From assembly GCA_047495785.1 (NCBI GenBank), contig JBLDXI010000029.1, forward strand, positions 124,001-188,000: a DNA stretch of 64,000 bases. The letters are read 5' to 3'. The stretch comes from Lepidodermella squamata. Lineage: Eukaryota; Animalia; Gastrotricha. The notes under the pieces are model-generated. The model made no database searches. It worked only from the letters and a program-made list of their open reading frames with translations, and was not told the DNA's origin. Position 1 is the first letter of the stretch. Every line of letters starts with the position of its first letter. Shown one piece after another: positions 25,736 to 62,866 of this stretch. Position numbers and translations under genes: made by a program.

Positions 25736-26856
25736 TCAGGCCGATTCGGTGGCTCGGCTCATCTCCGCCTTGCCATCACCGCCGCCGCCGTTTTCCTGAT
25801 GGCCATTTTCGACATGTTGCTGCTGCTGTTGTTGCTGGTGGTGGTCATCGTTGTTGCTGCTGGTTGTTTTTTGCTGCTTTTTCGCCTGTTTCCCCGAGCT
25901 GTTGCCAGAGCTCGGCTTGTAAGTCGAAGCGGGCATGGGAGGAAATCGATTTCTGAAATTCAAAAATTCATAAATAAATGTTTAGAAATTTTAACAAAAA
26001 ACGGAATAATTTTTCTAAATTTTCAAATAAATCAAATTTTCATACAAAATAAAGAAATGAGATTGATTTTTTTAATAAATAATGTTGAAATTTTGCTGTG
26101 ATCCGAAAGAAATTAGCATACAAATGAGAAAATCGGGAAAAATGTCGGAGAAATGTTGGAAATTTCGGCTTACGGTGCGACGAGGAGAGCTTTCAAATCG
26201 CTGATTTCACTGAGCAGCCGGTCGTCGTGACCCAGCTGACCCGATGACGACTCGCCCGGCAGCAATCGGCCATTGGCCAGCACAGCCAGCGACTCGCCGA
26301 GGGCCTGCTGCCTCGCGACCACGTCATTCAGGGTGACTAGAACCACGTCCAGTTTCGCCAGCAATTGCTCGCTAGAAATCGACGCATCACCAGCCGCCGA
26401 CGCCTGTTGTTGCTGCTGCTGCTGCTGCCTCGCGTTATTCAAGTACGGGTTAGTTGAACTCGGACCGCGGGGCCGTTTACTCGTCCGCAGGCCGAGCACG
26501 TCTTCGATGTAGGGCAGCAACAGGCGTTTGAACAGATAACCGACTACAGCGACCCCGGACGCCACTTTGACGAGCCGCCATACGAAATTGACTAATCGAC
26601 TGATCAGGCTAGGCTGTGCGATTTCGATAACTGTCGATGACGATTGCTGCTGGGTTGAGAGTTGCTGCTGTTGCTGTTCGGCAGCGGCGACCAACGCGCG
26701 TTCGATCGTCGCCCGATCGATGCCCTTATCGATGAGGAATGTGATTTTGCGCTCATCTGGCAGGCCGTACACTTTCGGGTTGGTTAGAAATTTCACTGCC
26801 AAATCGAACTGCTGCCGCTGCTGTTCGTCGCCGCTCGAATTCGAATCGCTTTCCAT
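25736..26856 (-). CDS. PEX14: Peroxisomal membrane protein PEX14; exons 26856-26174 and 25952-25736
   Basis: N-terminal domain AVKFLTNPKV...RKITFLIDKGI...IERAL, hydrophobic segment, coiled coil, and EISDLKALL...NRFPP across the splice junction. Confidence 0.88.
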
Positions 26857-27770: not shown

Positions 27771-30700
27771 TCACTTTGTGGACGAGTGCGGTTTCGTGAT
27801 TTCGATAAAGCCGTCCGCGTTGTCCTCCGATTGCTGGCCCGGATTGCTGAGTGCCCGCCTCGAAGACGAAGAGGGCATAGGCGGCAGGTACCACGACGAG
27901 TCCACCTTTTGCTTATCCTTGTCCTTGCTTCGAGACGATGAAGACGATTTGCGCTCCTCGCGATGGTTATGGTGATGCCTTCGGCCTTTGCCCGTAGTCG
28001 TCGCCGTCGTCGCCACCGCCTCGTGCGTGAGCAGGTCGTCGAGCTGGCTGCACTCGTTGTGGTGGTCGGCAAGGCGCGAACTCGACAGCTCGAACACGGC
28101 CGAGTACGAGCGCAGGATGGTGGCGAGCGAGCGCTCGAACTCGTCGAGCTCGCCGCTCGCGAACAGGAAGCCGAGCGCGAGCGACGGGTCGATGTTCGAG
28201 AACGAGGTTTTCTGCGGCGCGTCGCAGTGGTACGACCGCGTGTCGAACAGGTGCGGGTTCAGCTCCACGTCCACTGTCGGCTGCAAAATACATACAACAT
28301 TCAAAAGAGACTGAAAATTTTGAAAAATTTGGTGAATCAGAGATAATATTTTTGATGTTAACCTTGATCTCTATCTTCTTTATAAAATCTATAATAATCA
28401 AATTGATACTTCGATCTCAAGAAATATACAATTACTTAATTCAAATACTCGCGGCCATCCTCATCGCCTCATGTTTTGCCTTCCTAACGGATCCTATCGT
28501 AATGCTACCAAACCTATTTTTGAAAATTATTTTCTAAATCGTGTCTTGCCAATATGGAACAATCTTCCTGATTCTGTTTTCATTTCTTCGGATAATTTTA
28601 CTACCAAATTCAACTTTTTTAAATCCAAAATTACTAAACTCGACTTTTCCAAATACTGTCCGTCCTGTAACTGATATCTTTTTATACATTGTGATTTGTG
28701 AATAGTAAAACTGCATACTCTTATTGTCGCACAACTCGATTAACTTACACTACATATGTACTAATTGGTTCAAAGTTAGCGGCCTGCGTGCCCTTTTGAA
28801 ACCACGAATTTCTTTTTGTACCAAATTTTTATACGAAAGTATATTTTTCGAAATAAACATAATAATACGGAATGGCTATTCGTACATAGTAATAATACCC
28901 TCGGGCTTCGCTTCGCTACGCCCTCGGGCATTTTCAGCGGGCCGCAATCTCGTTTCTGCCCTCAACACCGTTAAGGAATCCTTAATTTCTGCATTGTTTT
29001 TTAGCCTCATCCATAGGAGAATATTGATTTATTGATTTGATTTATTGTGGACGCACAGCAAAGATTGGTTAGGTGCCCCCTCGAACCTGCGCACCTGGTA
29101 AAAATTAGCTCGCTGGACAATCACTTAATTCGCTGCGCGAAGGTTTGTGCTTTTTATAATAAAGAATTCATCTTTTTCTTATAGCAAGTCGGCGATCATA
29201 ATGTCGAAGTCTGCCCACACAATGTTGCGCACATCTGGAGAAGAGATCGAATGACGTTAGAGGAACATCTGAAGGCCTGCCATCGGGATTTAGCGGCGAT
29301 GCAAACGACAGTCCTCAATACTGTCCCTCTCCCGATAGCCGCTCCGGCTGCTAACGTTGACGCTGAAGACATTTGACATTTGCTGAAAATCCTGTCGGGC
29401 TGCAGATGCAAGCGAAAACAACATACATCTCTGGTGTTTTCCCTTGGTATTTAGGAGATCTCAAAATCGCACAGATCAAGAAATTATGCCTGGGAATTCG
29501 TCTTTGCGATCAACGAGGTTCTTCGGAAGGACTTATCCGCATAGGTACCAATGTGGTTCCAATCAGTGATGTTTTCGCTTCTACTACAACATCGAGTTCG
29601 AAGCTCGCCCCTCCCCCTACCGCATCGACTCCGTTGTTCGAAGACTCGTGTTCAAAAATATTGGCTATATCCAATATTATTACTAATAAACTGCTTCCCT
29701 CCGAAATTCGACATTTCCTACTTCAAACAGAAGATGAACGCTCTAGGCCCAAGTCTTTAAATATTACAAATTGTAATGTAGCCGAATATTCTAGGTGAAT
29801 AAAAAAAAATCCCATGGTTAATAGGGTGAATATAACAAATTTTTCCATAATAATTGGCAAAATACTACTCTCGGATGTTGCCTACAAGAATGCGAAAGTC
29901 ATATTTAGTTATCTTTTCCCCTCTTGGAATACGATCAATTTTTAAATTTCGAACCGGTGCACGTTTTTCTTATTCTTTTTAAAATGGAGTAAAACGTTGT
30001 CTTGGGTATTTTTCCTGGTCTATCTGACTTCACAGGCGTGTCCGGCAGGGTCCAATTGACGACCCATTTTTTGAAATTCCATGAAAAACTGACAGCACAA
30101 TAGCCTGGCTGGTGATTTCTAGGAATAGCTTACGGCAGCCAATTTTCTGATTCCTTCCTTAATTCGCTCGAAAATTCAGAATTTCAATTTTTTTTGCTTG
30201 GCTGAAAAAAATTCCGCCGTGAAAGGGTTAAAATTCATTGAAAACAGCAAATTATTAGACTATTTAAAATTGTCTTTTCTCCGCTCAAATTCAAGTTAGT
30301 CTATAAAGGGGGTCAAATTTCAAATTTCCGATTATAAATCAGCAAGAGATAATTCATTTACTGTTGGCTTTAGAAATATGTGACTCGTGTGACTGTGATA
30401 ATATAATAAGTACCTGGCAGTAGTGGGGGTCGAGGTAGATGAGACTCGAGCCCTGGAAGCCGACAAAGTAGAGCGAGTGCTTCGGCTTGCCGCCGATGAC
30501 GCCGAGCGAGAAGCGCAGCGACATGAACGCCTTGAGCGTCGGCTCGTACGCCGCGTCGAACTCGACCATGCCGAGGCGCACCGGCACGAGCACGAGCACG
30601 CCGTCGTGCGTCTGCGCCAGGTCGTGCAGGTCGCCGAGGAACAGCGTGCCATCCACCGCCACGTGCATGCCCAGCCGGCCAATCTCCGCGTTCGACCGCC

Positions 30701-32520
30701 CGGCGTCGTCCAGCGCCCGCCGCAGCACCACGCCGATCGACGACGGCCCGAACCAGTCGCCTAAAATTAACAAACATACAAAGATAATTGACCATGTTGA
30801 CTCAAATTTGAAAATTAAAGGGGTTGAAATCATTTTGAGCCATCGGATTTGGAACTCGTACTACGCTATTCCTTCTCACACTGATTTTTGTATTCGCGAC
30901 AAGTTTTGCTTTGAATGTGGAGAGCCAACTGATGGGTCTCTCTCCCTCTCTATCTCGAAACTTGATAGTATCTCCAAGATTACTAGTTATTTCGAATGAA
31001 TGAATGAGCTGTCGAGCATTTCGAATAAAAATTATAAAAAAACCGATGTAATTTTCAAGAAAAGCATTGCCTGCAAATGAAAATAAAGTGCATGTTGTGA
31101 ATGTTACCTGGTCGTTTGGAGAGGCAGGCCGAGCTGAGCTCTGTGAGGGCGTGTATGGAGAAGGGCGAGGCGTGGCGGTTGGGCGAGTCGGCGAACCACC
31201 GGATCACGTGCCGCTGCATCGCCACGAGTTCCGCCTGCGACACGGCGCCGCGCTGCCGCTGCCGCAGCGCGATGAACGCCTGCGCCAGCAGCATCTGCCC
31301 CGACCGGATCATGCAGCCCCAGCCGAGGTCCGACGTCACGGGGCCGCCACCGCTGCTGCTTGAAGAGTCCGCATTCGCTGACGACGACAATTGAGACGGC
31401 GATGAACTAGTTGTTGCTGTGGTTGATGACAGTTGAGTACCAGGCAGAGGGGCGAAGTTCTTGCGATACGTCACCCAGATTAGCGAGCGAAAGTCTGCTC
31501 GGAAGCGGTCGAAGGGCGAGCGCGCAAACTTGGCCGGGTGCGCGTACCCAGTCACGTCGTCCGAGCTCGCTTGTCTAATAACATTGAAACATAAATAAGA
31601 CTTCGACGAATTCGATGGCTAACAAAAAGTTTTCGACTGAAAACTTGAAAATTGATTTACATAAATTTTCATATCCGAAATGTTCTCAATTTCTCGAAAG
31701 CTGATCGACCCAACCCCAAAAAAGAATTACCCTAGAAATCCAAAATGCTACGCTAATTCTTGTCCTGAAGAAACCACCCTCACTGGAGTAACCAGAGCCA
31801 TTTCTAGATCTAAATCCTAGACCTCGGACCCCTTATCCGGCACTCAGAATTTTAATGAAAAAAAACGTTGTCTCACCTCTGAAGGGCGTAAGGCCGGCCT
31901 AGCAGCCAAATGGGTTGGTTGTCACTGATGGGCGACAGCAATTCGGCCGCTTTCACTTTGAAGCGCGCGTTGTTCCAGAGCAGCTTCAGCTTGTCACCCA
32001 GCGACGACTCGGCCGAAGTCGCCGAGTTATTTGGCGAAAATTCAGTATTATTGCCATTATTATTACTGCCGGCAATGAGCGATCGGCCCATGATTTCCCA
32101 ATCACTCGAGCCATTCTGCGGCGAATGCGACGCCTTCAGCCGCGTGCCGAACGACGACATTTCCGGCTGAATGACTACGGGCAGGCTTTCCACGGAGTCG
32201 AACGACTTGGCGGGGCGGACGGGCGGCGGCACGATGACGATCGATTGGCCCAGGTCAGAATTGTTTTGATTGGTCGAGTTGGGCAGGCTCGAGAAACACG
32301 CGTCCTCTAGCAGTAACGAGTGCGGCGATCCGAGGCCGTTCGATTGTAGGTTCGAGGAGGCGTTCGTGTCGTCGATTGCGAGTCGGAGGGGCCGGTCGAC
32401 GATTTCGAAGGGCGGCGACCTCGACAGCACGTCGACGCCGGCGGCTTCTTCGTCGTCGACGTAACTACTCGCCAGCTGTAACAAACCACTCATCGATAGT
32501 TCACTCGAAAAGGCGAGCAT
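27771..32520 (-). CDS. ATG4: Cysteine protease ATG4 (ATG4C/D-like); exons ~32520-31877, 31574-31108, 30760-30414, 28280-27771
   Basis: IWLLG, WVTYRKNF, catalytic SDLGWGCMIRSGQMLLAQA, GDWFGPS, IGGKPKHSLYFVG, YLDPHYCQ, SYHC, IDPSLALGF. KLKLLWNNARF resembles the C/D subfamily N-terminus. Confidence 0.93.
28360..28700 (+). mobile_element. 5'-truncated non-LTR retrotransposon (CR1/L2-like) ORF2 3' end, in ATG4 intron 3
   Basis: One frame reads DLYLLYKIYN...NTRGHPHRL...YFLNRVLPIWNNLP...FFKSKI, the motif series typical of the post-RT C-terminus of CR1-group LINEs. Confidence 0.78.
29047..29376 (+). CDS. GTSF1/Asterix-like tandem CHHC zinc-finger gene or pseudogene, nested antisense in ATG4 intron 3; exons 29047-29142 and 29185-29376
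   Basis: Exon 1: CPLEPAHLVKISSLDNHLIRCAK (C-x5-H-x9-H-x3-C). A 42-nt GT-AG intron. Exon 2: QVGDHNVEVCPHNVAHIWRRDRMTLEEHLKAC (C-x5-H-x11-H-x3-C). The apparent start is GTG rather than ATG. Confidence 0.75.
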
Positions 32521-33379: not shown

Positions 33380-36295
33380 TTAAGCTGATCCCGTCTCAAT
33401 CGCCGTCACGCCGTTCGTCTTGGCATCTCGCAGGAATCGCACGATCACGGCGGTCATGTTGTCGCAGCCGGTGCCGTCGCCGGCCGTCGACGGCGCCAGG
33501 CACACGTCGAACAGCTCCGAACAGATCGCCGTCAGCGATAGGCCTAAAAACACAGAAAAATTCAATTTCCGCAATTAACTTCAATAATTTTCAAATTCTT
33601 CGCTCTTCTCGGAAAAATTAGAAAGTCAAAGGGATTCGACGCAAATTGTTCAGTAAAAGAATAAACTTGATTGAAATTCAAAATCGATTCGATAAGCCGA
33701 AATGGTCCACTCAAAGCTGAGCATTTGGCAAAAGAAATTAGCGCTTGTTTGATCATTATATGATAGCTTCAAACAATAGCACCAACTTTTTTAATTTGGA
33801 TTTAGAATCAGAACCTTTTTTCGTGAAAACAAAATAAACTGTAGCGAAGCGGAATTTTAAAACCTGCCACCAAACGCGAATTGGTTGACCTGGGTTCAAA
33901 CTGAAAATCGCATGGAATCTCAACGTAATTTCTCTGAAATCAATTGTGAAATTCCAGAAAATTCAATTATGAGTGATTGTATTTTCACTGGAATTCAGGA
34001 TTTGAACGGAGATTCCGCGAATTCTACGGACATTTATTCGATTATTCTTAAAAAAAATTACCTCTTGCGATGCGTTCTGCGACGAAAGCGCCGACCTCGT
34101 CGTTGGTCATCGAGTTCCAGATGCCGTCGCACGCCAGCACCATGAACTCGGCGCCGTTCAGGTCGGCGACCTTGACGTCAGGCCGCGCCGACACCATCTG
34201 CTCGTCGAGCGGCAGGCTCGTGTTCCGCTTGTACAGGTGGTCGCCGATGGCACGCGACAGGTTGAGGCCGCCCATGACGCGGCCGTCCGGCGTCACGCGC
34301 CCGCCCGCCTTCGAGATGCGCGCCAGTTCCGGCTCGTCGTCCGGCTTGTGGTCGAACGACATGGGCTCGACGCGGCCCTTCGCGTACAGGATGCATCGCG
34401 AGTCGCCCGCGTTCGCCACGATCAGCCGCTCGCCCGCCACCACCGCCACGATCGCAGTCGCGCCCGAACCAACGCCAGGTTGCCTAGACATTAGCATTAT
34501 ACATTATTAAAACAAGAAAATGAAATGCTTCGGAAAAAACAATTTCGGAACTTCATACAGCTGGATTTCTTATATGCTGCATTTTTAGCTTTTCCAACTC
34601 GCATTTCTCACGTAAAACACGTTGAAAATATAAAACGCTGTCTGGTGAGAGGATAGATACGCAACCTTGTAATGGCCATGAGGCTTCATCCACCTTATCA
34701 AGGCTATTTGAACATTAAATAAAACTGTATGGTACCTTTCGTCAGGCGGCGATAGGAATTCGAGATCTGGACCACCGCGGACTTTGATGGCACATGCTCC
34801 ACTGTCTTCGCCCTCCTCTTCTTCATTCTCACCCTCCTCGTCTTCATCTTCGTCTTCGACGATGCCTCGCTGGGCAAGGATCGATCGCCGAAGTAGAGCA
34901 CCACCCAACAGGCCGAGGGCCTTTTTCTTCATGCGAGCAGCGGCGCCTTCCTCGCTGTCGTCGCCACCCGCTTCATCGTCGTCGGAATCATCTTCACCAT
35001 TGAGCAATTCGTCTTCCATCATTTCTCTAAATGATTCAGCGTAAAAATAGGTCGCAATTTAGAATTTCAAGGCAACAAACTTGTAGATTCGGTCTTCGTC
35101 GTCCGTTGATTCTTCAGAATCTTCTTCCTCAGATTCGTCGTCATCATCATCAGATTCTTCCTCATCACTCGCTTCTTCCTCGCTAGCTTCATCCTCTTCC
35201 TCTTCGCCTTCAGCTGAGTGCTCTGAACCTCCTTCTTCATCTTCGACTTGTTCGTCCTTCTCGGCCTTATCGTCAACTTTCTCCGTGATTTCAACCTGTA
35301 AAAAAGCAGGAATAACTCAATTAAAGGAAAATATGTGAGCAATTTACGTTGTTTTCTGAAGCTTCATCTTTTTTCGATGCAGGATTAGCGTTGTTGAGCT
35401 TTTTCTTACAGTCTGACAACGGTCCATCGGGGCATTTACCATCGGCGTGTTCTTTCTTGTGATCACTCGCCCCATTTTCGTCCATCAACAGCCGCTTCTC
35501 TTCAGGTTCGGTCGCTGGTGAACCCAGCGAACCGTTCTGTTGCTGACTAGCTGTCGTTTCCGACTTCTCAGGTGTCGACTTTTCGCCATTTTCTGCCGCC
35601 GGCTTCTCAGGGCGGGTTGATTGTTTCTTGCTGTTCACCCAAGCGCGCTTACGCCCTGAGGTGGTCAATGGAGAGCTTGAGGAAGTTGAGGCACCTTCGG
35701 CAAGCTTTGACGACCCAGCACCTTCAAGTTTCTCTTTCTTCTTATGCAGGTAAGGAGAACCCTTTTTCGGCTTGACAATTCTCGCAATAAGATCTGCCAT
35801 CGACATTTGAGCCTCAGCTTTCAACGCCTCAGGATCGTCTCCCGACGCGTCACTGACCTCTGAATCGTCGTTGTCTTCTTCGTCTTCATCTTCATTGGCG
35901 CCGTTTTGTTGCTTGGAATGGCCATTCTTGCCACCTTCTGATTTCGAACGCTGATCCATTAACTCGGCGCGAACTTTGTCGTCGAGGAGAGCCTTATCGA
36001 GGGCGAGAAATGTTTCGACAAGCGCTTTCTCAATGTCACCCTTCTTGTACGCTTCAAGCTCTGTGAAATACGTGAGAAATTTATCGGCGCAAAAGCGAGA
36101 GATGTCCGAGCCGCCGTGACCGTCGAATACGCCGAAGACTGAGTAAGCGCCACAATCAACGTCGAGGTGACAACAGTGTGCGTCTTCTTGAGCCGTTCGC
36201 CAGCCTTGCATGCTAGAGGCACCGTATTCCAACGTAGAGGAAGCAGCATGCGCCGAGAATTTCTCGGTGGCTGGCTTGGCTAAGTAAACTCCCAT
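33380..36295 (-). CDS. PPM1G: Protein phosphatase 1G (PP2C-gamma); exons 36295-35348, 35295-35081, 35026-34736, 34483-34062, 33543-33380
   Basis: [27 protein letters not shown], long acidic insert, [41 protein letters not shown]. Confidence 0.95.
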
Positions 36296-37107: not shown

Positions 37108-40100
37108 ATGGCAGGTAATTCGCTATCGTTACGGGCGATTATCAGGGAGTCTATACTTGGATTCCTCTTTTGGAACTTGTTCTGGAACCTCGCACCCTCA
37201 GTGTGGTTTTACCCACTCAACGAAATGGGTGTTACTGGCTACGAAAGTGCCGCTCTCGCCTGGTTCAGCCCGCTTCTTCTGGGCATCCCAGGGCTGCGAG
37301 CGCTGCTCAAATCGAGGCTAGGCCTGATTTTAGCTCGCCTAACAACCATTGCCTGTCTATTCGCTCATCGTTCGGACGGCGCGTTGCAAAAGCTGCTCAT
37401 CAGCTGTTTAGGGAACGGTTCTCTCTTCATTTCTACAACCGTGTCTCTGTGGTCCCTCAGCGTTCACGTGCGTCGTGCAACCTTCTGGGGCTTGATTCTC
37501 GGCTTTTTCGCAACTATCAGTGCTCGTGTTTGGTGTTACACGTTTCTACCAGCTTGGTTCACTGACGAAACCAATTTGATCTGCTTCGGTTTTGCCCTGC
37601 TTGCTACGCTAGATAAAATCATTTCTGGCGACGACTGGGCATTGACTAACACGACACCAGCTCAAGCCAAGGTCAAAACCAACTGGATTACGGCATCGGC
37701 TGGTCTTGCGAGCTTGTTATACGTAATCTACTGGCTGTTCAGCGAAATCTCGGTGGTGACGCGATGGGTGCTATCGACATATCCCACTCCAGGACCTCAG
37801 CCTTTGCCATTTGGGTGAGTCTTGATTGAGAATTGACGGTTATTATTACTCTGAATGATGAGCTGCACAGGGGTCTGAGAGTGATTTTATTCATTCATTG
37901 AAAGACAGGCATAAATGCTACGATAACACTGAAATTGTAGCCCAATAGCGGGCATCGATCTTATTATTCTACTGTTTTAGCTAATGTTTTCGATTTCAGA
38001 CTGCCAATTCTTGCAAGTTTGACGATTGGGCTATTCCTCGGCTTCAACTACAACTTAGCAACCAGTTTGCTATGGTGGTTGGTCGGAACTGGCTGTTTTG
38101 CCGGGGTCTACCTGCTTCCTAGCTGGTCTGGCTACGCATGCGGTGTTGGCCTCGCAATGTACGCCTCATCGTTGCTGATTTTCATGTTCGACGCCTTCAT
38201 CGCAAATGGCCAATCACCGCCGATTCGATCGATGACAGTGTTCTCATTCATATTTTTCGCCGAGCTTCTCTTCAACATTTTCACTGTTGCGTACAATTTC
38301 GTGTACGAATTCGGCGGAGCTTACGCCAGGGAACGGTCTGACATTTTGATTGGCGTACTGATGTTCTTCATTCTGGTTGCTATTCTGCGAAATCGCGGCT
38401 TGGTCAAGCAGAAGAGCGGCGTGCATCAAGCGTCGCTGCGAGACTGCGGTAAAGCCGCGAAGACGTTCCTGCTGCTCTTCGTGCTGGCCGGCGTGACTGG
38501 CGTTGCGTGGCGCATGTCGAAGGTGGAAATGCGGCCGGCGCCTCGGTCTCGCCCGGACACGCTGCGAGCCGCCGTGTTCACGTGCCACTTCGGCTTCGAC
38601 AACCGCGGCTGGTGGAACGCGCTGCGCATGATCGACTTCCTGAACAACACGGACGCCGACGTGATTGGCATCCTCGAGAGCGACACGTCGAAGCCGTTTT
38701 TGGGCAACAACGATTTGACAGCTGTCATAGGTAGGTCGCACTTACTTGAATCGAGAAAAAGATAAAAGTGATGTTGTTGTTGCTGTTGTCAGGCGAGAAA
38801 CTGGGCATGTATACGGACTTTGGGGCGTCGACGCGGGACCACTGCTGGGGCGTGAACCTGATCTCGCGGTTCCCGATCGTGTACTCGGAGCACCACCTGC
38901 TGCCGTCGCCGAACGGCGAGATCGCGCCGGCGATCCGCGCCGGGCTCGACGTGGGCGACGGGCGCATCGTCGACGTGGTGGTGACGCACATGGGCATCGA
39001 GGAGGACGACGGCGACCGGAAGCTGCAGGCGGCCGAGCTGGGCCGCATCCTCGCGCGGTCCGCCGACTCGGCCGTCTTCCTCGGCTACATCACGTCGAAG
39101 CCGTTCTCGCGCGACTACACGCAGCTGACGGTGACGGGGCGCATGACGGACGTGGACACGACGGACGGCGACCGCTGGTGCGAGTACATTCTGTACCGCG
39201 GCCTCGCGCGCCTCGGCTACGCGCGCGTCACGCACGGCCAGCTGTCGGACACGGAGTTGCAGATGGCGACGTTCAAGCTGCCCCAAGTTGGGGCGACCAA
39301 GGCGGACCTGACGGCGATGATCGGCGCCAACAAGGCTGTCGTCACCGACGGCAACAAGGTCGCGACGGGCATTCGCTTCCCTGAATGGTAAGTTCAATCA
39401 TGTACTACCGGTGGCTTTTTGCTGTTTTTGAAGATATTTGCGGCGACTCTTCCGCCACTATCGAGATTTTCAAATTGAAACTTTTCCCAGCAAGTTTTCC
39501 CTCTTTCCTAGTTTCAATATTGGGTCAAAAGGCATTGAGGGCGCAATTTTCTTGATAATGCCTTTCTAAAATCGACTATAAAAATGGATTTCATGGGCTT
39601 TGAGAATGTGATCTATTGTGAAGTACAAATACTTGGGGATGTGTAAAATTCCTAGAGAAGTACATTTCTAGTTAGTAAGTAAATATTTCAATTTTCAATT
39701 TGAAATTCCCAGCCAGAAAACGGAATTATATATTTGCATGGTGACCATTCAAAATGCAGAAAACTCATTTTATCCGACCAATGTCTTATTTCATCCGACA
39801 ACGAGATGTGACTAAAACCTGCCGATTTGCTGTTTCATATTTTGAAAAAATTACAGTAAAAAAGTGACCACTCGGGTCGCCATAACTCTTTCACCATAAA
39901 GTTATGCCGGTTCAGGGGCCAAAATAGGGTGCATAAAAGGGGTATGCCCCTACGGAAAAATCGAACTTGGGAAAATCGAGAAAAATCGATGCTTTTATGC
40001 CGGATGATTTTAGTCACATTTTTGGTTGTCGGATGAAAAAATCACACCCTCAAAATGGCCTTTTCTTGAAGAGGGTTCCAACTTTTTCCAACCTTGGTTC

Positions 40101-42659: not shown

Positions 42660-43649
42660 ATGGGTATCCTAAAGGTCGGCTACTGGCTTTCAGACGACAA
42701 GAAGGAGAAGTTCAATTTCAAGCAGTTCGTCAAGTTCTGCTCCCAGCGAGGCATCGCCTTGGTTAAAGTGCAACTCCGCGACGACATGTCACAAAACAAC
42801 GGTAAACCCGCATTTTCTCTATTTATTCACAAGCTGAATGATTTAGTCGTCGACGCAGACAAAGGCCATGTAGCTGCTGCCGATCGATTGTCGACATTCG
42901 AGCGGTGGATCTCCAATCACCCGGAAGTCGATGTCATCGATCCTCTTTGCTACACTCGTGTTCTTTTAAACCGGTTCTCTATGTCGAAAGCTATCGAAAA
43001 GACGTGTGCAAATCTTGATGAATCTATCTTCTTCATTCCTCCCTTTTGCGAGCTTTCGACCCGTTCGGATATTACGAGAGGATTGATTAGTCAAGCCGGG
43101 TTACACTTTCCGATTATATGCAAACCTATTATGGCCGAAAGTCATGAGATCGTCATAATAACTCACGTAGAAGGCTTGGAGTATGCGCCAGTTCCGTGTC
43201 TCGCTCAAACTTACATCAGCTATCACCAACTGTTGTATAAAATGTACATTTTGGGCGACAAACTCTACTGTATTGCACGGCCCTCCTTGCCTGATCCCAG
43301 TGCGCTAGTCAGCATGGGTCTGGTGCTGCGTTTCAACACTGCCACATTAAGCAAGATCCAACCCAGTGGCTGCGACTCGAATCGACAAAACCTTGTCTCT
43401 GCGTGCCAGCCGTCGGTCAAGTCGCTCCAAGTCCTAGCCACAGCGCTACGGAATGAGCTCAAATTGGAGTTGTTCGGTGCCGACGTGATGGTGGAAGCGG
43501 CAACCGGCCGCTTGGCATGCGTGGATGTTAACACGTTTCCCGGCTACAAAGGTGTGCCAGACATCTTTGGTGAACTGTGCTCGTTCCTGACGAGACGTGC
43601 GCGAGGTGAAATCTCGCCACAGAGTCAGATGCCAATATTCATTTCTTAA
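42660..43649 (+). CDS. ITPK1: Inositol-tetrakisphosphate 1-kinase, single coding exon
   Basis: 329 aa: KVGYWLS, FIHKLND, HPEVDVIDP, FPIICKP, PCLAQTYI, LYKMYILGD, RPSL, LFGADV, VDVNTFPGYKGVP. Confidence 0.9.
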   Translation: MGILKVGYWLSDDKKEKFNFKQFVKFCSQRGIALVKVQLRDDMSQNNGKPAFSLFIHKLNDLVVDADKGHVAAADRLSTFERWISNHPEVDVIDPLCYTRVLLNRFSMSKAIEKTCANLDESIFFIPPFCELSTRSDITRGLISQAGLHFPIICKPIMAESHEIVIITHVEGLEYAPVPCLAQTYISYHQLLYKMYILGDKLYCIARPSLPDPSALVSMGLVLRFNTATLSKIQPSGCDSNRQNLVSACQPSVKSLQVLATALRNELKLELFGADVMVEAATGRLACVDVNTFPGYKGVPDIFGELCSFLTRRARGEISPQSQMPIFIS

Positions 43650-58452: not shown

Positions 58453-61400
58453 CTATACAGCCCTCGCGCGTTTCTCGTCGTGCAGTGAAGACCGGCCAGT
58501 ATTGCTACTGCTGTAGTTGATGACTTTGCGCGGGTGATTGCGATACCTAACTCTAGCTTTGAATTCAGCAACTTCGCGTCGAAGAGCATCCAATTCAGCA
58601 CGCAGAGACGCAATTGCCTCAAGAGTTTCTTCATGGTCGCACTTCTCAAGCCGCTGCCGTTTCTTCGGCTTCTGAGTGGTGGTCGTATTCACGATCGGTG
58701 GCTCATTTTCGTCAAGTTCAACCGTAAGCGAGTCGTCGAGATTCGGGTCTAAACGTAAGCTTCGAACTGGTGGCAGTTTCTTATTCTCGGTATTAGTTCG
58801 TAAAAACACCGATTTGCCTTCGAATTGAGGAATATTGTGACTTGCGAAGCCGAGAGTTGGCGAAACAGGGTTCAAGCGTCGTTGATTGTCGAGAATAGAC
58901 TGGAGGAGCTCTCGTTGCGGCGCTCCAACACAATGCCCGTCAGCGTAGCAGCAATCGCGCCAATACGCCAGATTGACTCCAGCATCAAGTTGACTGCACT
59001 TGACGTAGTCGCCAGTCGAAGGCGGTAGGGCGAAAACGTCCTCCTGAACATGGGTGATGTTATCCGAGGTGTCGCAGATAACGCGGGCCAAGCTCGATTT
59101 GCGGAGCTGGAAGAGTTGCAATTCCGTGAAAACTCCAGGCTTTTCGTACCAGAATCGATCGGCGTCTCGCAGCCGGCGGAATTGTTCGACCAGAATGCAG
59201 ATGAGGGTGGGCCCAACTACGGCACCTTCAGCTGGGTCTTCAGATACCAAGCCAGGAAATAAATCAATGTTAGCTGGATGACCGTAGAGCTGCTGCAGTG
59301 TTCGCAGAACTTGGTCGTTTCCAATATCACCCCGTAAATCGGCCCAGTTTGAAGCATCGCCAAAGCCGCACATCTTGCGATACGCAGTGTATCCCTAAAA
59401 TGGAAATGCCGAAATTTCACGTGAATTGAAGTAATAACCCAGGCGCTTACCTGAATAGCATGATCACGGCCGCGTTGGATGTTCAAACTGGCCAAGTCGA
59501 GAGCCAAATCATGAGCCAGGGCGAATAGCCGCTCTGTGAGCTCACTGTTCAGCGCGCTTCCGGGTTCGAAGTGTTTTGCAGGATGGGCGAACAGCCCACG
59601 AACAATCGCATCAACGCCACCATCATCATCTAACATGCGATATGGCGCGAAGAAGGCCTCGTGCAGTGGCAGATGGCCAGATTTCAACGGCTGTAAATTC
59701 TCGTCATAACGCGCTAGGAACGGCATGATCAAGGTGTGACCGAAGCGGAACGCAGCTGTGGCGAATTCGTTGAAAATATCCGGCTGGAGAGAGTCGTTGT
59801 AGCCGCGGTATTCGCCTAATTGGCGCATGCCGATTGGTCCGATAATTTTTGGCAGCCAGTGGTTGTACGTTATGTGCTGCATTTCAGCCCCGACTATTTT
59901 ACGCGCTTCCTGAAAAATGCGCTCAGGCTGCCAGTCAGCATTGAGTTCGCGAAGCTCGGACGCAATACGGTTGTGTTCTCGCACCCACAGAGTATGCATA
60001 GCTAAGTAAAGTGAATATTAGTCATTTTCGATAGGCCTTGCTAAGCTTCCGTACCTAATAAGCCGAGCTGCTCGTTAGCACGATGATCTCCAGCTAGGAA
60101 ACACGGGACATGCGCTCTGGTCGCATCCATCTGGCAGTCCATTTCACCATGAGGTGCGAACGGAAGCAAATACTGCTCTCCAAAGCGCGATTTCGGTCCA
60201 ACTCGCAGCAAATAACCGGTGTTGTGACGGTCACGCAGGTCGTTGAGTAGCTCATTTGTCGAGCCATAGACAGCTGAGGCATCGAGCCACGCCGTAAGCT
60301 GGTTGAACTGTTCGCGGGGATAGACGTAGTTGACGAGGAGACTGGTGGAACCGGTGCCGCAAGTTGAAGCAGAACGTGTGACACCAATGCAGCGATGGCG
60401 GCGAATGCGAGCGTCATCAGATGCCACGGCGATCGGAAAACATGGCGCTTCATTTATACACGTCTCATTGCACCTCATTCCTATGTTAGATAGTTAGGCA
60501 AGTCATTAGAAAGTTCGATTGAGCTGACTTTTTACATCTTTTCATAAATTAGGGGAAAATTTCTACTAGCATGTTACCTGACTATTCAATTCTATTAAAT
60601 TCTCCCAAGCTTACCCGATCCAAAAGCGACATTCGCAGCCGTTTGAGGCGTGAAAGTCAAGTCGTGGTCAATGAACTGTCCCCATTGCATCAGCATGTGC
60701 GTAAATTTTGCATGGCGCTGCGGTTTGTGCGCGGTCAGCACTCGAGTTGATACCAATCTTGCGGATGGAAGTTTGTACCCATTGTAAAGCTTGTCCGGGT
60801 TCCATCCACGAGGCTCTCCGAGGCCGTTTTCGTAAACGGCGCCCAGTAATCGTGCGAATGGCATATGAGACGCACCCCAAGTCGGGACTCGCAAATTATT
60901 GCAGGTGCCATCAGCTGAACGGTACTTGGAGTGGAAACAAGCATCTGAACAAGCAATGGCATGAGGCTGCCGATGAGGCAAACATCCCGATAGGTTGGCG
61001 ATAAGCCTAAAAATAGTCCTTCATTAATCTCTCGAAAGAATCACTTGAAGCCTTACCTTAAATGGGATTCACTAAGCAGATGAGTCCCCACAATTGGCGA
61101 GGTTCCATCGCCGGTAGGAGCGTAATTGAATCCACCTGTTGCCAGTTGATCTTCAATCAAGGCCAAAGAACGTTCGTAAATCTCAGATGCCTCGCTCAGG
61201 GCAATGCCTTGTTCGTCAGGTTGACGAAGAATAGCCTGAATGTCCTGAGGAGTGCGTGGTCGAGAGGTGTCCGCAAAATGCTTCTGAGTTGTCTCGCGAG
61301 CCTTTTCAACTTCATGGCGAGCTTTGTTCACTGCATCTACAACATCACTGTCCTTCAGTCCACCTCGGCTTACCTCTGAAACAAAGAATGTACAACTTGG

Positions 61401-62866
61401 CTGGAAATTCTAGGGAGTAACTCACCTATTTCGAAACTGCGATCAGTGTTGGGAGGATTTACGTGGGCTAAAGGCCTCCGCTCAACGAAAGCAGGTTTAG
61501 AGGGCCGATTCGCAGAAGCCCGAACAGAAACTCTCATGGTTGCGGAAACTTCATCGACATCATTGAAAGCCGTGCAAGTGTAAACCCCAGCGTCTGAAGA
61601 TTTCATGTCCCTGATCTCAAGCCGGCCTGTATCCGCCCCGATAGACACCCTAGGATCCTCACTTAGAGGCGTCGCATTGCTTTCATCTCTCAGCCAGTTT
61701 ACCAAGGGCGGTGGAGAGCCAGCGGCACGGCATTCAGCGACCAAAGTTGACCCAACTTCAACTTCCAAGTTTTCCGGGGGTGTTTCAGTTAGTTCAGGAG
61801 CTCGGCCGCTTGATAACGATAACCTCCAACGATATTCACCGATGACTTCGTTCAGCCGATTTCGAATCGAACATTCATAGACGCCAGCATCACTCGGGGA
61901 TACGCTCAGGATTCTCAGTACTCCGAAATCGTCAGAAAGTCGCCATGTTGATGGCAAAGATGACACTACGTCACCATCCTTCGCCCATTCTACCGAAGAG
62001 ACACCCTGGGCATCTCGCTCTGCCGCGCTGGTTGGGGCCCTGGCACAGTCAAACTCAGCCGCGCCGCCCTCCCCAGCCCAAACTTCGTCTGGAGGCCGGG
62101 GCACAATGAGAAGGGTTGAAGTTGCCGCAATGACTTGGCCACTCGTCGATGCGGCGACGCAAGTGTAATCACCCGCGTCCTGCGGTCTGACATTAGTGAT
62201 TGCGAGGACCCTGCCTGAGTCTAACAATTGGATTCGATCATTCGCTTCAACGGGTTGGTTGAACCGTGACCAGGTCTCCAGGATTTGAGTGATATCGGGT
62301 TGGCTGCCCTCGGATAGCTGAGCCTCGCAGACTAGCTCTACACTTGAACCGAGGTGGGCAGTTAGAGTTGGTGGTGGTTTTCTCGCAAAATGTAACGAAT
62401 TCCCTAGCAGCTCATCCGCCAACACCTTCAGGCGGGTTCCGTTGAGAAATCGACCATTAGGAAGGGGTCGGGTCAGACCACCCTGTCGGCCTGCTGTAGT
62501 CGGGGCTGTCGTGCCTTGGCTGCCCGCAGCGGCGAGTTTCACCAGCAAGCAGCGGTAAGAACCCGAATCAGCCGCCTGAGCGTGTCTAATCAGCAGAGTT
62601 CCGTTCGCGAACACCCTGTAATGAACGCCATCAGGTCGGATGAGCCTCGAATCTTTCGTCCAGATCAAGCGCGATCGGGAGGTGTTAGTCGGAGCCGCCA
62701 GCCGGCAGTCCATCCGAACCGGCTTGCCGAGGGCCTGCGTCATCGGGTGCATCACCTGGTGCTGAGATTCGTGAAGAGGCAATGGCTTTCGAGCCATCGA
62801 AGGTTCGCCGACCTCGGCCGCTACCATTAAGAACGGCACGGCCAAGGCGGACACAAGCCAATTCAT
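58453..62866 (-). CDS. PXDN: Peroxidasin-like heme peroxidase (signal peptide, 4 Ig domains, peroxidase domain, coiled coil); exons 62866-61426, 61375-61057, 61006-60615, 60480-60055, 60001-59451, 59394-58453
   Basis: Four Ig Cys pairs (YRC, YTC, YEC, YTC); LIANLSGC; [10 protein letters not shown]; QWGQFIDHD; [12 protein letters not shown]; REHNR; AFRFGH; LNIQRGRDH; DRFWYE. Confidence 0.92.

Follow-up and report, generated by a model that had tools for sequence, protein, structure and literature searches.

GTSF1 (Asterix) proteins are small cofactors that enable PIWI proteins to cleave transposon RNA, and several GTSF paralogs are common in animals; Drosophila has four, mouse three, and silkworm two. 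Here we describe a GTSF1-like unit with two CHHC (Cys-His-His-Cys) zinc fingers that lies within an intron of the ATG4 gene of the gastrotrich Lepidodermella squamata. The unit is found at positions 29047-29376 of a stretch of 64,000 nucleotides (contig JBLDXI010000029.1 of assembly GCA_047495785.1, positions 124,001 to 188,000 of the forward strand); we refer to this whole stretch as the window, to the unit as the window copy, and to positions in the window by number alone. From comparisons of its sequence, we think it probable, though well short of secure, that the locus is an unprocessed pseudogene in early decay, derived from an old member of the GTSF1-like family.

The activities of GTSF proteins have been assigned to distinct parts of the molecule. 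Mouse GTSF1 binds PIWI via three tryptophans, W98, W107, and W112, mutants of which have a more than 60-fold lower affinity, whereas R26, R29, K36, and K39 in the first zinc finger (ZnF1) are RNA-binding positions (PMC9385479). Accessory GTSFs often evolve fast and are dispensable, and it is regions outside the fingers that determine their partner specificity (PMC9385479, PMC9539491, PMC9808576). For mouse GTSF1L and GTSF2, binding to PIWI has been reported to occur through the zinc finger and not through the tail (review, PMC9539491). L. squamata has a conventional ping-pong pathway of PIWI-interacting RNAs (piRNAs), and seven PIWI-like proteins have been reported in gastrotrichs (PMC6468455).

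Results

A two-finger unit antisense to ATG4

The features that the initial annotation of the window had read directly from the letters, that is, two CHHC fingers, a 42-nt intron, and the TAG, GTG, CAG, and duplication described below, are all present where it had placed them. Exon 1 (29047-29142, plus strand) has 32 codons, the first of which is GTG (29047-29049), and is translated as VDAQQRLVRCPLEPAHLVKISSLDNHLIRCAK; it contains finger 1 (29074-29136, plus strand), for which a direct reading gives the canonical spacing CX5HX9HX3C. Intron 1 (29143-29184, plus strand; 42 nt) has GT..AG ends and is in phase 0, and its retention would introduce an in-frame TAG. Exon 2 (29185-29376, plus strand) is translated as QVGDHNVEVCPHNVAHIWRRDRMTLEEHLKACHRDLAAMQTTVLNTVPLPIAAPAANVDAEDI followed by a stop; it encodes, in order, a linker, finger 2 (29212-29280, plus strand; CPHNVAHIWRRDRMTLEEHLKAC), a 31-residue tail, and the TGA stop at 29374-29376. 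Finger 2 has the spacing CX5HX11HX3C, that is, an 11-residue middle spacer, and the linker between the two fingers is 11 residues long, equal to that in the canonical GTSF1 of the same genome. The spliced frame comprises 95 codons with no internal stop or frameshift, and all eight zinc ligands are present. Two other features are found at its edges: a candidate CAG acceptor at 29056-29058 and a tandem duplication of GACATTT (29368-29374 and 29375-29381, plus strand), across the junction of which the TGA stop is located.

The host gene is identified by minus-strand open reading frames (ORFs) at 31055-31555, 30354-30833, and 27771-28304 that match positions 2-106, 104-228, and 224-267, respectively, of the Peptidase_C54 family. 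The host intron of ATG4 (28281-30413, minus strand), which separates the exons of the last two of these ORFs, has its GT at 30413-30412 and its AG at 28282-28281; the CHHC unit is therefore antisense within the ATG4 intron. The two pieces of the unit appear in the ORF track as 45 and 41 amino acids, so the gene would be missed. Thus, the description with which we started, a GTSF1-like gene with its fingers split by an intron, nested antisense in an ATG4 intron and overlooked by the ORF track, is correct. In codon usage, the CHHC exons score 0.15-0.20 bits per codon, and they do so only in the proposed frame; known exons in the window score alike.

All of the searches, folds, and alignments that follow were performed separately for each exon; the codon analysis pooled the alignment columns of the two exons. 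Exon 1 scores 30.4 bits in the Pfam family zf-U11-48K (PF05253), whose cut-off is 21.1 bits, so finger 1 passes the hidden Markov model check that the initial annotation had proposed for the unit. The top PDB matches of exon 1 are mouse GTSF1 (6x46; E 8e-5) and the GTSF1 chain of 9nhb, from PIWI complexes. A DNA profile constructed from three intact paralogs (described below) matches 29048-29369 with E 1e-19 (nhmmer); given this match and the Pfam score of finger 1, the two-finger unit is not a chance occurrence.

Exon 2 alone has neither a Pfam nor a PDB match. The second fingers of the intact paralogs, which are enlarged, are likewise under the Pfam cut-off (14.8-17.8 bits), so the Pfam blank for exon 2 of the window copy is a trait of the family. 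With exon 2 of one intact paralog (L004) as the query, tblastn identifies 29185-29370 in the window (E 5e-11); also, the exon-2 family profile matches ZnF2 of mouse GTSF1 (6x46; E 3e-6), with U11-48K about 1000-fold weaker than GTSF1. An AlphaFold (AF2) model of exon 2, computed with the family alignment as input, has a moderate predicted local distance difference test score (pLDDT 64.5) and a beta-beta-alpha arrangement over the finger; Foldseek with this model returned six rows, all of them CHHC proteins (U11-48K chains included), with E-values that are not significant. In the predicted protein, exon 1 places K, S, R, and K at the positions of mouse R26, R29, K36, and K39, so that three of the four putative RNA-binding positions are basic. 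At the level of sequence, we regard the membership of the two-finger unit in the GTSF1 family as settled.

Protein databases contain no obvious counterpart. Word searches were blank for exon 2, both that of the window copy and that of one intact paralog, a look-up in the ESM Atlas gave sub-threshold zf-TRAF-like leads only, and an exhaustive search of 1.84 billion protein representatives with a 63-residue query found no ortholog, the only matches being four unrelated repetitive proteins. The absence of an ortholog carries little weight: the query was short, and the sampling gap is such that ITPK1, a conserved protein encoded in the window, has a best match of just 52% identity among 5.8 billion proteins.

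Paralogs in the same genome

Seven CHHC sites in the genome score over the Pfam cut-off. The genome profile search located a canonical GTSF1, both fingers of which are X9 (C42:2796364-2796589), and three intact paralogs with three exons each: L004 (G000:C42:3370269-3370850; site C42:3370287), L001 (C31:~1141500-1142150; site C31:1142061), and L002 (C31:~1105000-1105680; site C31:1105582). L001 and L002 are located on one contig, with 36 kb between them. The search of the genome for a parent, which the initial annotation had suggested together with a search for paralogs, found no recent one.

The three intact paralogs have about 150 codons each and are mutually alignable at the DNA level across the whole coding region (1483-2057). 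Their N-termini conform to M-x-P-x-x-(E/Q)-L-(V/L)-x-C-P, and a phase-0 intron is found two codons past finger 1, a position that is common to all three and to the window copy. Finger 2 has the form CPF..SH(I/V)WLK.PG.SV..H...C with an X12 middle spacer, and it is followed by CPSR, a variable stretch, and then EEDWG(S/A)GPA.E.P.(E/D)IQ(I/L)GR. Exon 2 ends at a GTAAG donor in phase 2, and exon 3 is E/K-rich with the motif ..L.AF/WK.R..

The nearest relative of the window copy is L011 (also L019), an orphan finger-2-like exon on the minus strand at G000:C15:59137-59250. It shares 64% amino-acid identity and the X11 spacer with the window copy; in L011, Val replaces the first Cys and the Trp motif is also missing, and no finger 1 was found within 12 kb. 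It is odd, for a fragment, that nearly all of the differences between L011 and the window copy are synonymous. L011, too, is antisense, within an intron of an alpha/beta-hydrolase gene. Matches obtained with nhmmer had raised a duplicated ATG4-plus-nested-gene at this place; we rejected this candidate, the ORFs being those of an alpha/beta-hydrolase and the matches GC-rich noise. A family relic, L006 (G000:C46:1487385-1487462, minus strand), retains an ATG and an intact finger 1, but its intron donor is GA and its finger 2 is without its last His and Cys. Another candidate, L018, was rejected as a chance match.

The first ~33 nt of intron 1 are alike in the window copy (29143-29175), L004 (1579-1611, as oriented), and L006 (1579-1611, as oriented). 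The shared 33-mer, GTTTG.GCTT..TTT.TAAT..AGA.T.CATCTT, is about 85-90% identical among these and contains AATAAA in two copies; the similarity of the window intron to the other two exceeds that of shuffles with z = 6.9 (L004) and 5.4 (L006). The motif was not found elsewhere in the genome. This element has been kept in three loci despite saturation at the synonymous sites of the exons on either side.

At least 10 Piwi-domain loci are present in the genome (C9:1700840-1779836, C9:2188465-2241560, C25:1040633-1049657, and on C41, C55, and C56); several are clustered, and some have internal stops. This points to an Argonaute/PIWI set that is expanded and turning over, matching the GTSF expansion. 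Over the whole genome, the CHHC model identified no clear U11-48K or TRM13 finger; the sites above the cut-off are GTSF-like only, and two weak sites are sub-threshold (C42:2870468 and C7:1786463). This blank might reflect divergence, an overlooked candidate, or loss of the minor-spliceosome protein.

Age and selection

The comparison with the paralogs covered 74 ungapped codons. Between the window copy and each paralog, the proportion of synonymous differences (pS) is 0.69-0.86, that is, saturated, and the amino-acid identity is 36-43%; because saturation holds against every paralog, the window copy did not arise by recent duplication. A codon model with four taxa gives the branch of the window copy a ratio of non-synonymous to synonymous substitution (omega) of 0.05-0.15 and rejects omega = 1 (2dlnL, twice the log-likelihood difference, 13.8 over 74 codons); saturation makes the point estimates of omega unstable, but the asymmetry is robust. 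Relative to L011, over 31 codons, 13.5 of 18 synonymous sites and 11.5 of 75 non-synonymous sites differ (pS 0.75; pN, the non-synonymous proportion, 0.15). The terminal branch for finger 2 is 0.14 for the window copy and 0.73 for L011. As judged from its codons, these values show that the window copy was maintained as a protein under purifying selection through most of its history. Any neutral phase is capped by the total non-synonymous distance to L011 (0.17), and it was probably short, since neither the 95 codons nor the two splice sites have been damaged.

The initial annotation had offered, as one of two possibilities, a recently disabled DNA-level copy. The conserved intron position shows that the copy was made at the DNA level, and the unit does look disabled; however, the pS values contradict a recent copy. 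Rather, it seems to be an old gene that was disabled recently.

Lesions at the start codon and in the tail

The window copy has GTG where all four paralogs have ATG (Met aligns with Val). An in-frame stop is located two codons upstream of this GTG, and the spliced frame has no in-frame ATG ahead of the one inside finger 2.

At the other end, the DNA homology with the paralogs is confined to 29043-29370, from the start position to ..EED, and it ends at 29369/29370, immediately before the TGG of the EEDW in the paralogs. In the profile alignment, the EEDW of the family aligns with ..DEDW107 of mouse GTSF1, so the homology stops short of the codon for one of the three PIWI-binding tryptophans; the 31-residue tail of the window copy contains zero W, F, or Y. 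Farther downstream, 29454-29496 (plus strand) resembles the 3' end of exon 2, the counterpart in L004 being ..GGAGATCCAAATCGGCCGAAGCAATTACGCCTA|GTAA (..EIQIGRSNYA|GTAAGA). The local alignment of this remnant with the L004 tail has a score of 14 against a null of 8.7+-1.3, a score reached by 2/1000 dinucleotide shuffles; L001, too, aligns best at this place, although without significance of its own. The remnant shares the frame of the gene but follows two stops (the TGA at 29374 and a TAG near 29452), and the position of the GT donor is now GG. An ancestral tail was probably once present in the window copy, as this alignment suggests. For the Trp block and exon 3, alignment against shuffles found nothing alignable left downstream of the unit. 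Two earlier candidates were dropped: a by-eye alignment of the lost tail at 29382-29420 (AENPVGLQMQAK), for which Smith-Waterman comparison with shuffles was unsupportive, and an 'exon 3' at 29690-29760 (FDISYFKQKM), which had no Smith-Waterman support and is inside an interspersed repeat.

Two changes are found within the retained part. Intron 1 is 11-20 nt shorter than the introns of the paralogs, and finger 2 deviates at positions that are conserved in the family (F to H, PG to DR, and CPSR to CHRD).

The 7-bp duplication had been thought to split a longer, 141-codon frame from the gene. With a single copy of the 7-mer the gene still stops, one codon later (..EDIC*), so we reject the duplication as the cause of the truncation; it appears, from the letters around it, to be simply part of a scrambled stretch. 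The 141-codon open frame itself does exist (29373-29798, plus strand), but its frame is +2 with respect to the gene. It scores about 0 for codon usage, it has no Pfam match, its last ~40 codons are inside the repeat at 29680-29809, and a frame as long as 141 codons occurs in 1.6% of intron shuffles. Given the wrong frame, the lack of a family match, the neutral codon usage, and the repeat-derived end, we reject it as a coding continuation; it is most likely a product of chance.

Repeats and neighboring genes

The 2.1-kb ATG4 intron consists mainly of interspersed repeats, and its unique part is only ~29006-29679; the unit therefore does sit among repeats, which the initial annotation had taken for transposon relics. 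Upstream of the unit, a young repeat at 28358-28867 has 98% identical copies on two other contigs (68 and 43), and a ~100-bp repeat at 28894-~29005, with >15 copies of 94-98% identity, ends ~40 bp upstream of the GTG. Downstream are repeats at 29680-29809 (>10 copies, about 90% identity) and 29829-30231 (>20 copies, 82-89% identity). The repeats at 28358-28867 and 28894-29005 suggest mobile elements that were active recently.

The neighboring genes in the window are all ordinary. They encode a protein with a Pex14 N-terminal domain (26170-26856, minus strand), PP2C (35321-36295, minus strand), PGAP2IP (37108-38765, plus strand), the single-exon ITPK1 (42660-43649, plus strand), an animal haem peroxidase (58453-59999, minus strand), and an Ig-domain protein (61370-62866, minus strand).

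Discussion

If the locus is an unprocessed pseudogene in early decay, it would have originated as an old, intron-bearing member of a lineage-specific GTSF1-like family, copied at the DNA level and not retroposed; intron 1, at the conserved position of the family and with its 5' half alignable with L004 and L006, identifies it as a DNA-level copy and no retrocopy. Its earlier product would have been like those of the three intact paralogs, with two N-terminal CHHC fingers, an acidic EEDW tail, and a third exon. In the course of decay, ATG would have changed to GTG and a stop would have arisen just ahead of the Trp that matches the PIWI-binding residue; what remains of exon 2 would be the short remnant with its dead donor, exon 3 would have been lost, and young transposon copies would have inserted about 40 bp upstream. 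We infer that these lesions abolish both the production and the function of the protein. The disabling would also be recent, because the fingers, the splice sites of intron 1, and the coding-like codon usage are still intact.

Several observations weigh against this interpretation. The frame, the zinc ligands, and the GT..AG of intron 1 are all intact. The dN/dS near 1 that is expected of a pseudogene is not what we found; an omega far below 1 fits a pseudogene only if function was lost late. The context of the GTG is favorable (A at -3 and G at +4), and a 5' exon that has escaped notice could be spliced to the CAG acceptor at 29056-29058. Save for the start codon, the lesions are all within ~130 nt of tail, a clustering that also fits a past or present functional protein without a tail; since mouse GTSF1L and GTSF2 bind PIWI through the finger, loss of the tail need not end function. 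The ancestral tail, for its part, is traced by a single alignment (p ~0.002, or ~0.006 after three tries).

These observations lead to the strongest alternative, a functional minimal GTSF paralog of ~95 residues in which two CHHC fingers are followed by a short acidic tail. The initial annotation had proposed a minimal nested paralog of this size; we consider it possible yet doubtful, for it requires either initiation at a codon other than AUG or a 5' exon that has gone unseen. Translation would start at the GUG, or an unseen upstream exon would be spliced to the CAG at 29058; the protein would act on RNA via finger 1 and would have no canonical Trp-mediated contact with PIWI. Its possible modes of action include finger contacts, competition with full-length paralogs, and a role unrelated to PIWI as in nematodes, where GTSF-1 is reported to be a partner of RRF-3 and not of PIWI. 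The intact 95-codon frame, ligands, and splice sites favor a functional protein, as do the long-term purifying selection with its short finger 2 terminal branch (0.14), the coding-like codon usage, the three basic residues among the four RNA-binding positions of ZnF1, and the sparing of the fingers by lesions that sit in the tail. L011, the nearest relative, is likewise without the Trp motif, and mouse GTSF1L and GTSF2 provide a precedent for binding PIWI through a finger (PMC9539491). However, a functional paralog would have to do without an ATG, the first in-frame one being within finger 2; the ancestral tail probably existed and then decayed, and exon 3 was lost. The young repeats 40 bp upstream, the shortened intron, and the departures of finger 2 from positions conserved in the family also argue for decay. 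The absence of an ortholog among 1.84 billion representatives is a further point on this side, although that library is without close relatives of this animal.

In its most specific form, the alternative describes a live paralog with neither tail nor AUG, translated from the near-cognate GUG or from a transposon-derived 5' exon, that would have kept RNA binding and shed the Trp-PIWI contact; we regard this as unlikely. If it were true, the locus would be a natural separation-of-function variant, acting as a competitor or modulator of the full-length paralogs or as a PIWI-independent factor. The conserved 5' part of intron 1 could then, if the copy is live, control splicing.

An RNA-level role is far less probable than a minimal protein. 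According to this explanation, the locus would produce an antisense transcript that regulates ATG4, or it would be a source of piRNAs or other small RNAs in a repeat-rich intron; the antisense position of the unit, nested among young repeats, and the conserved 33-nt element at the 5' end of its intron are consistent with this, but the substitution pattern is protein-like, and a search of 28000-30600 against Rfam gave zero matches. Least credible of all is a recent partial duplicate made at the DNA level, which would have run from the start codon as far as EED and have been dead on arrival: the homology with the paralogs does begin a few bases from the start codon and end sharply at 29370, with repeats on both sides of the unit, but synonymous saturation against every family member, the nearest included, leaves no recent parent, the amino acids kept despite this saturation indicate selection after duplication, a remnant of the end of exon 2 is found downstream of the break, and no paralog in the assembly is >90% identical at the DNA level.

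Whether the window copy is a decaying pseudogene, as we favor, or a live gene affects what it contributes. A dead copy would be an ordinary case of birth and death and mainly a note for annotation, in which no gene should be called unless RNA supports it. A live copy would be a natural GTSF with RNA-binding fingers and without a PIWI-binding tail, which would help to separate the two activities. On either account, the locus reveals in an under-sampled animal a private expansion of GTSF genes, marked by an enlarged finger 2, that accompanies a single canonical gene and many Argonaute/PIWI loci; at least one member of the expansion has been caught between function and decay. The enlarged finger 2 of this private family, the orphan exon L011, and the conserved 33 nt of intron 1 are further points of interest.

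Comparison with known systems places the locus most closely with GTSF1/Asterix, as seen in the mouse structure (6x46) and in the complex of SIWI, piRNA, target, GTSF1, and Maelstrom (9nhb/9nhc). Like these, the window copy has tandem N-terminal CHHC fingers joined by an 11-residue linker, a finger 1 with canonical spacing in which three of the four putative RNA-binding positions are basic, and GTSF1 as the best solved-structure match for both exons (for exon 2 via the family profile). Unlike these, it has no AUG, the middle spacer of its finger 2 has 11 residues instead of nine, and the central and C-terminal PIWI-binding aromatics are absent, its frame ending one residue before the W107 equivalent. 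U11-48K and TRM13 likewise belong to PF05253 and share the small fold, but they have a single CHHC finger in a large protein, whereas the window unit has tandem N-terminal fingers in a tiny frame and is closer in sequence to GTSF1.

Within its own genome, the window copy shares with L001, L002, and L004 the start position, the phase-0 intron, an enlarged-loop finger 2 of the 'HIW' type, and the DNA homology over 29043-29370, and with L004, the copy on C42, also the 5' part of the intron; it differs from them in that the paralogs have an ATG, a 12-residue spacer, the tail block, the GTAAG donor, and exon 3. Among animals in general, the accessory GTSFs (mouse GTSF1L and GTSF2; Drosophila CG14036, CG32625, and CG34283/Tpp; Bombyx Gtsf1-like) are likewise extras beside one canonical gene; however, they are intact and expressed, and none is described that has lost both the start codon and the tail. 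GTSF paralogy is already well known, and the locus adds a member to the family, probably a dying one, in a new phylum.

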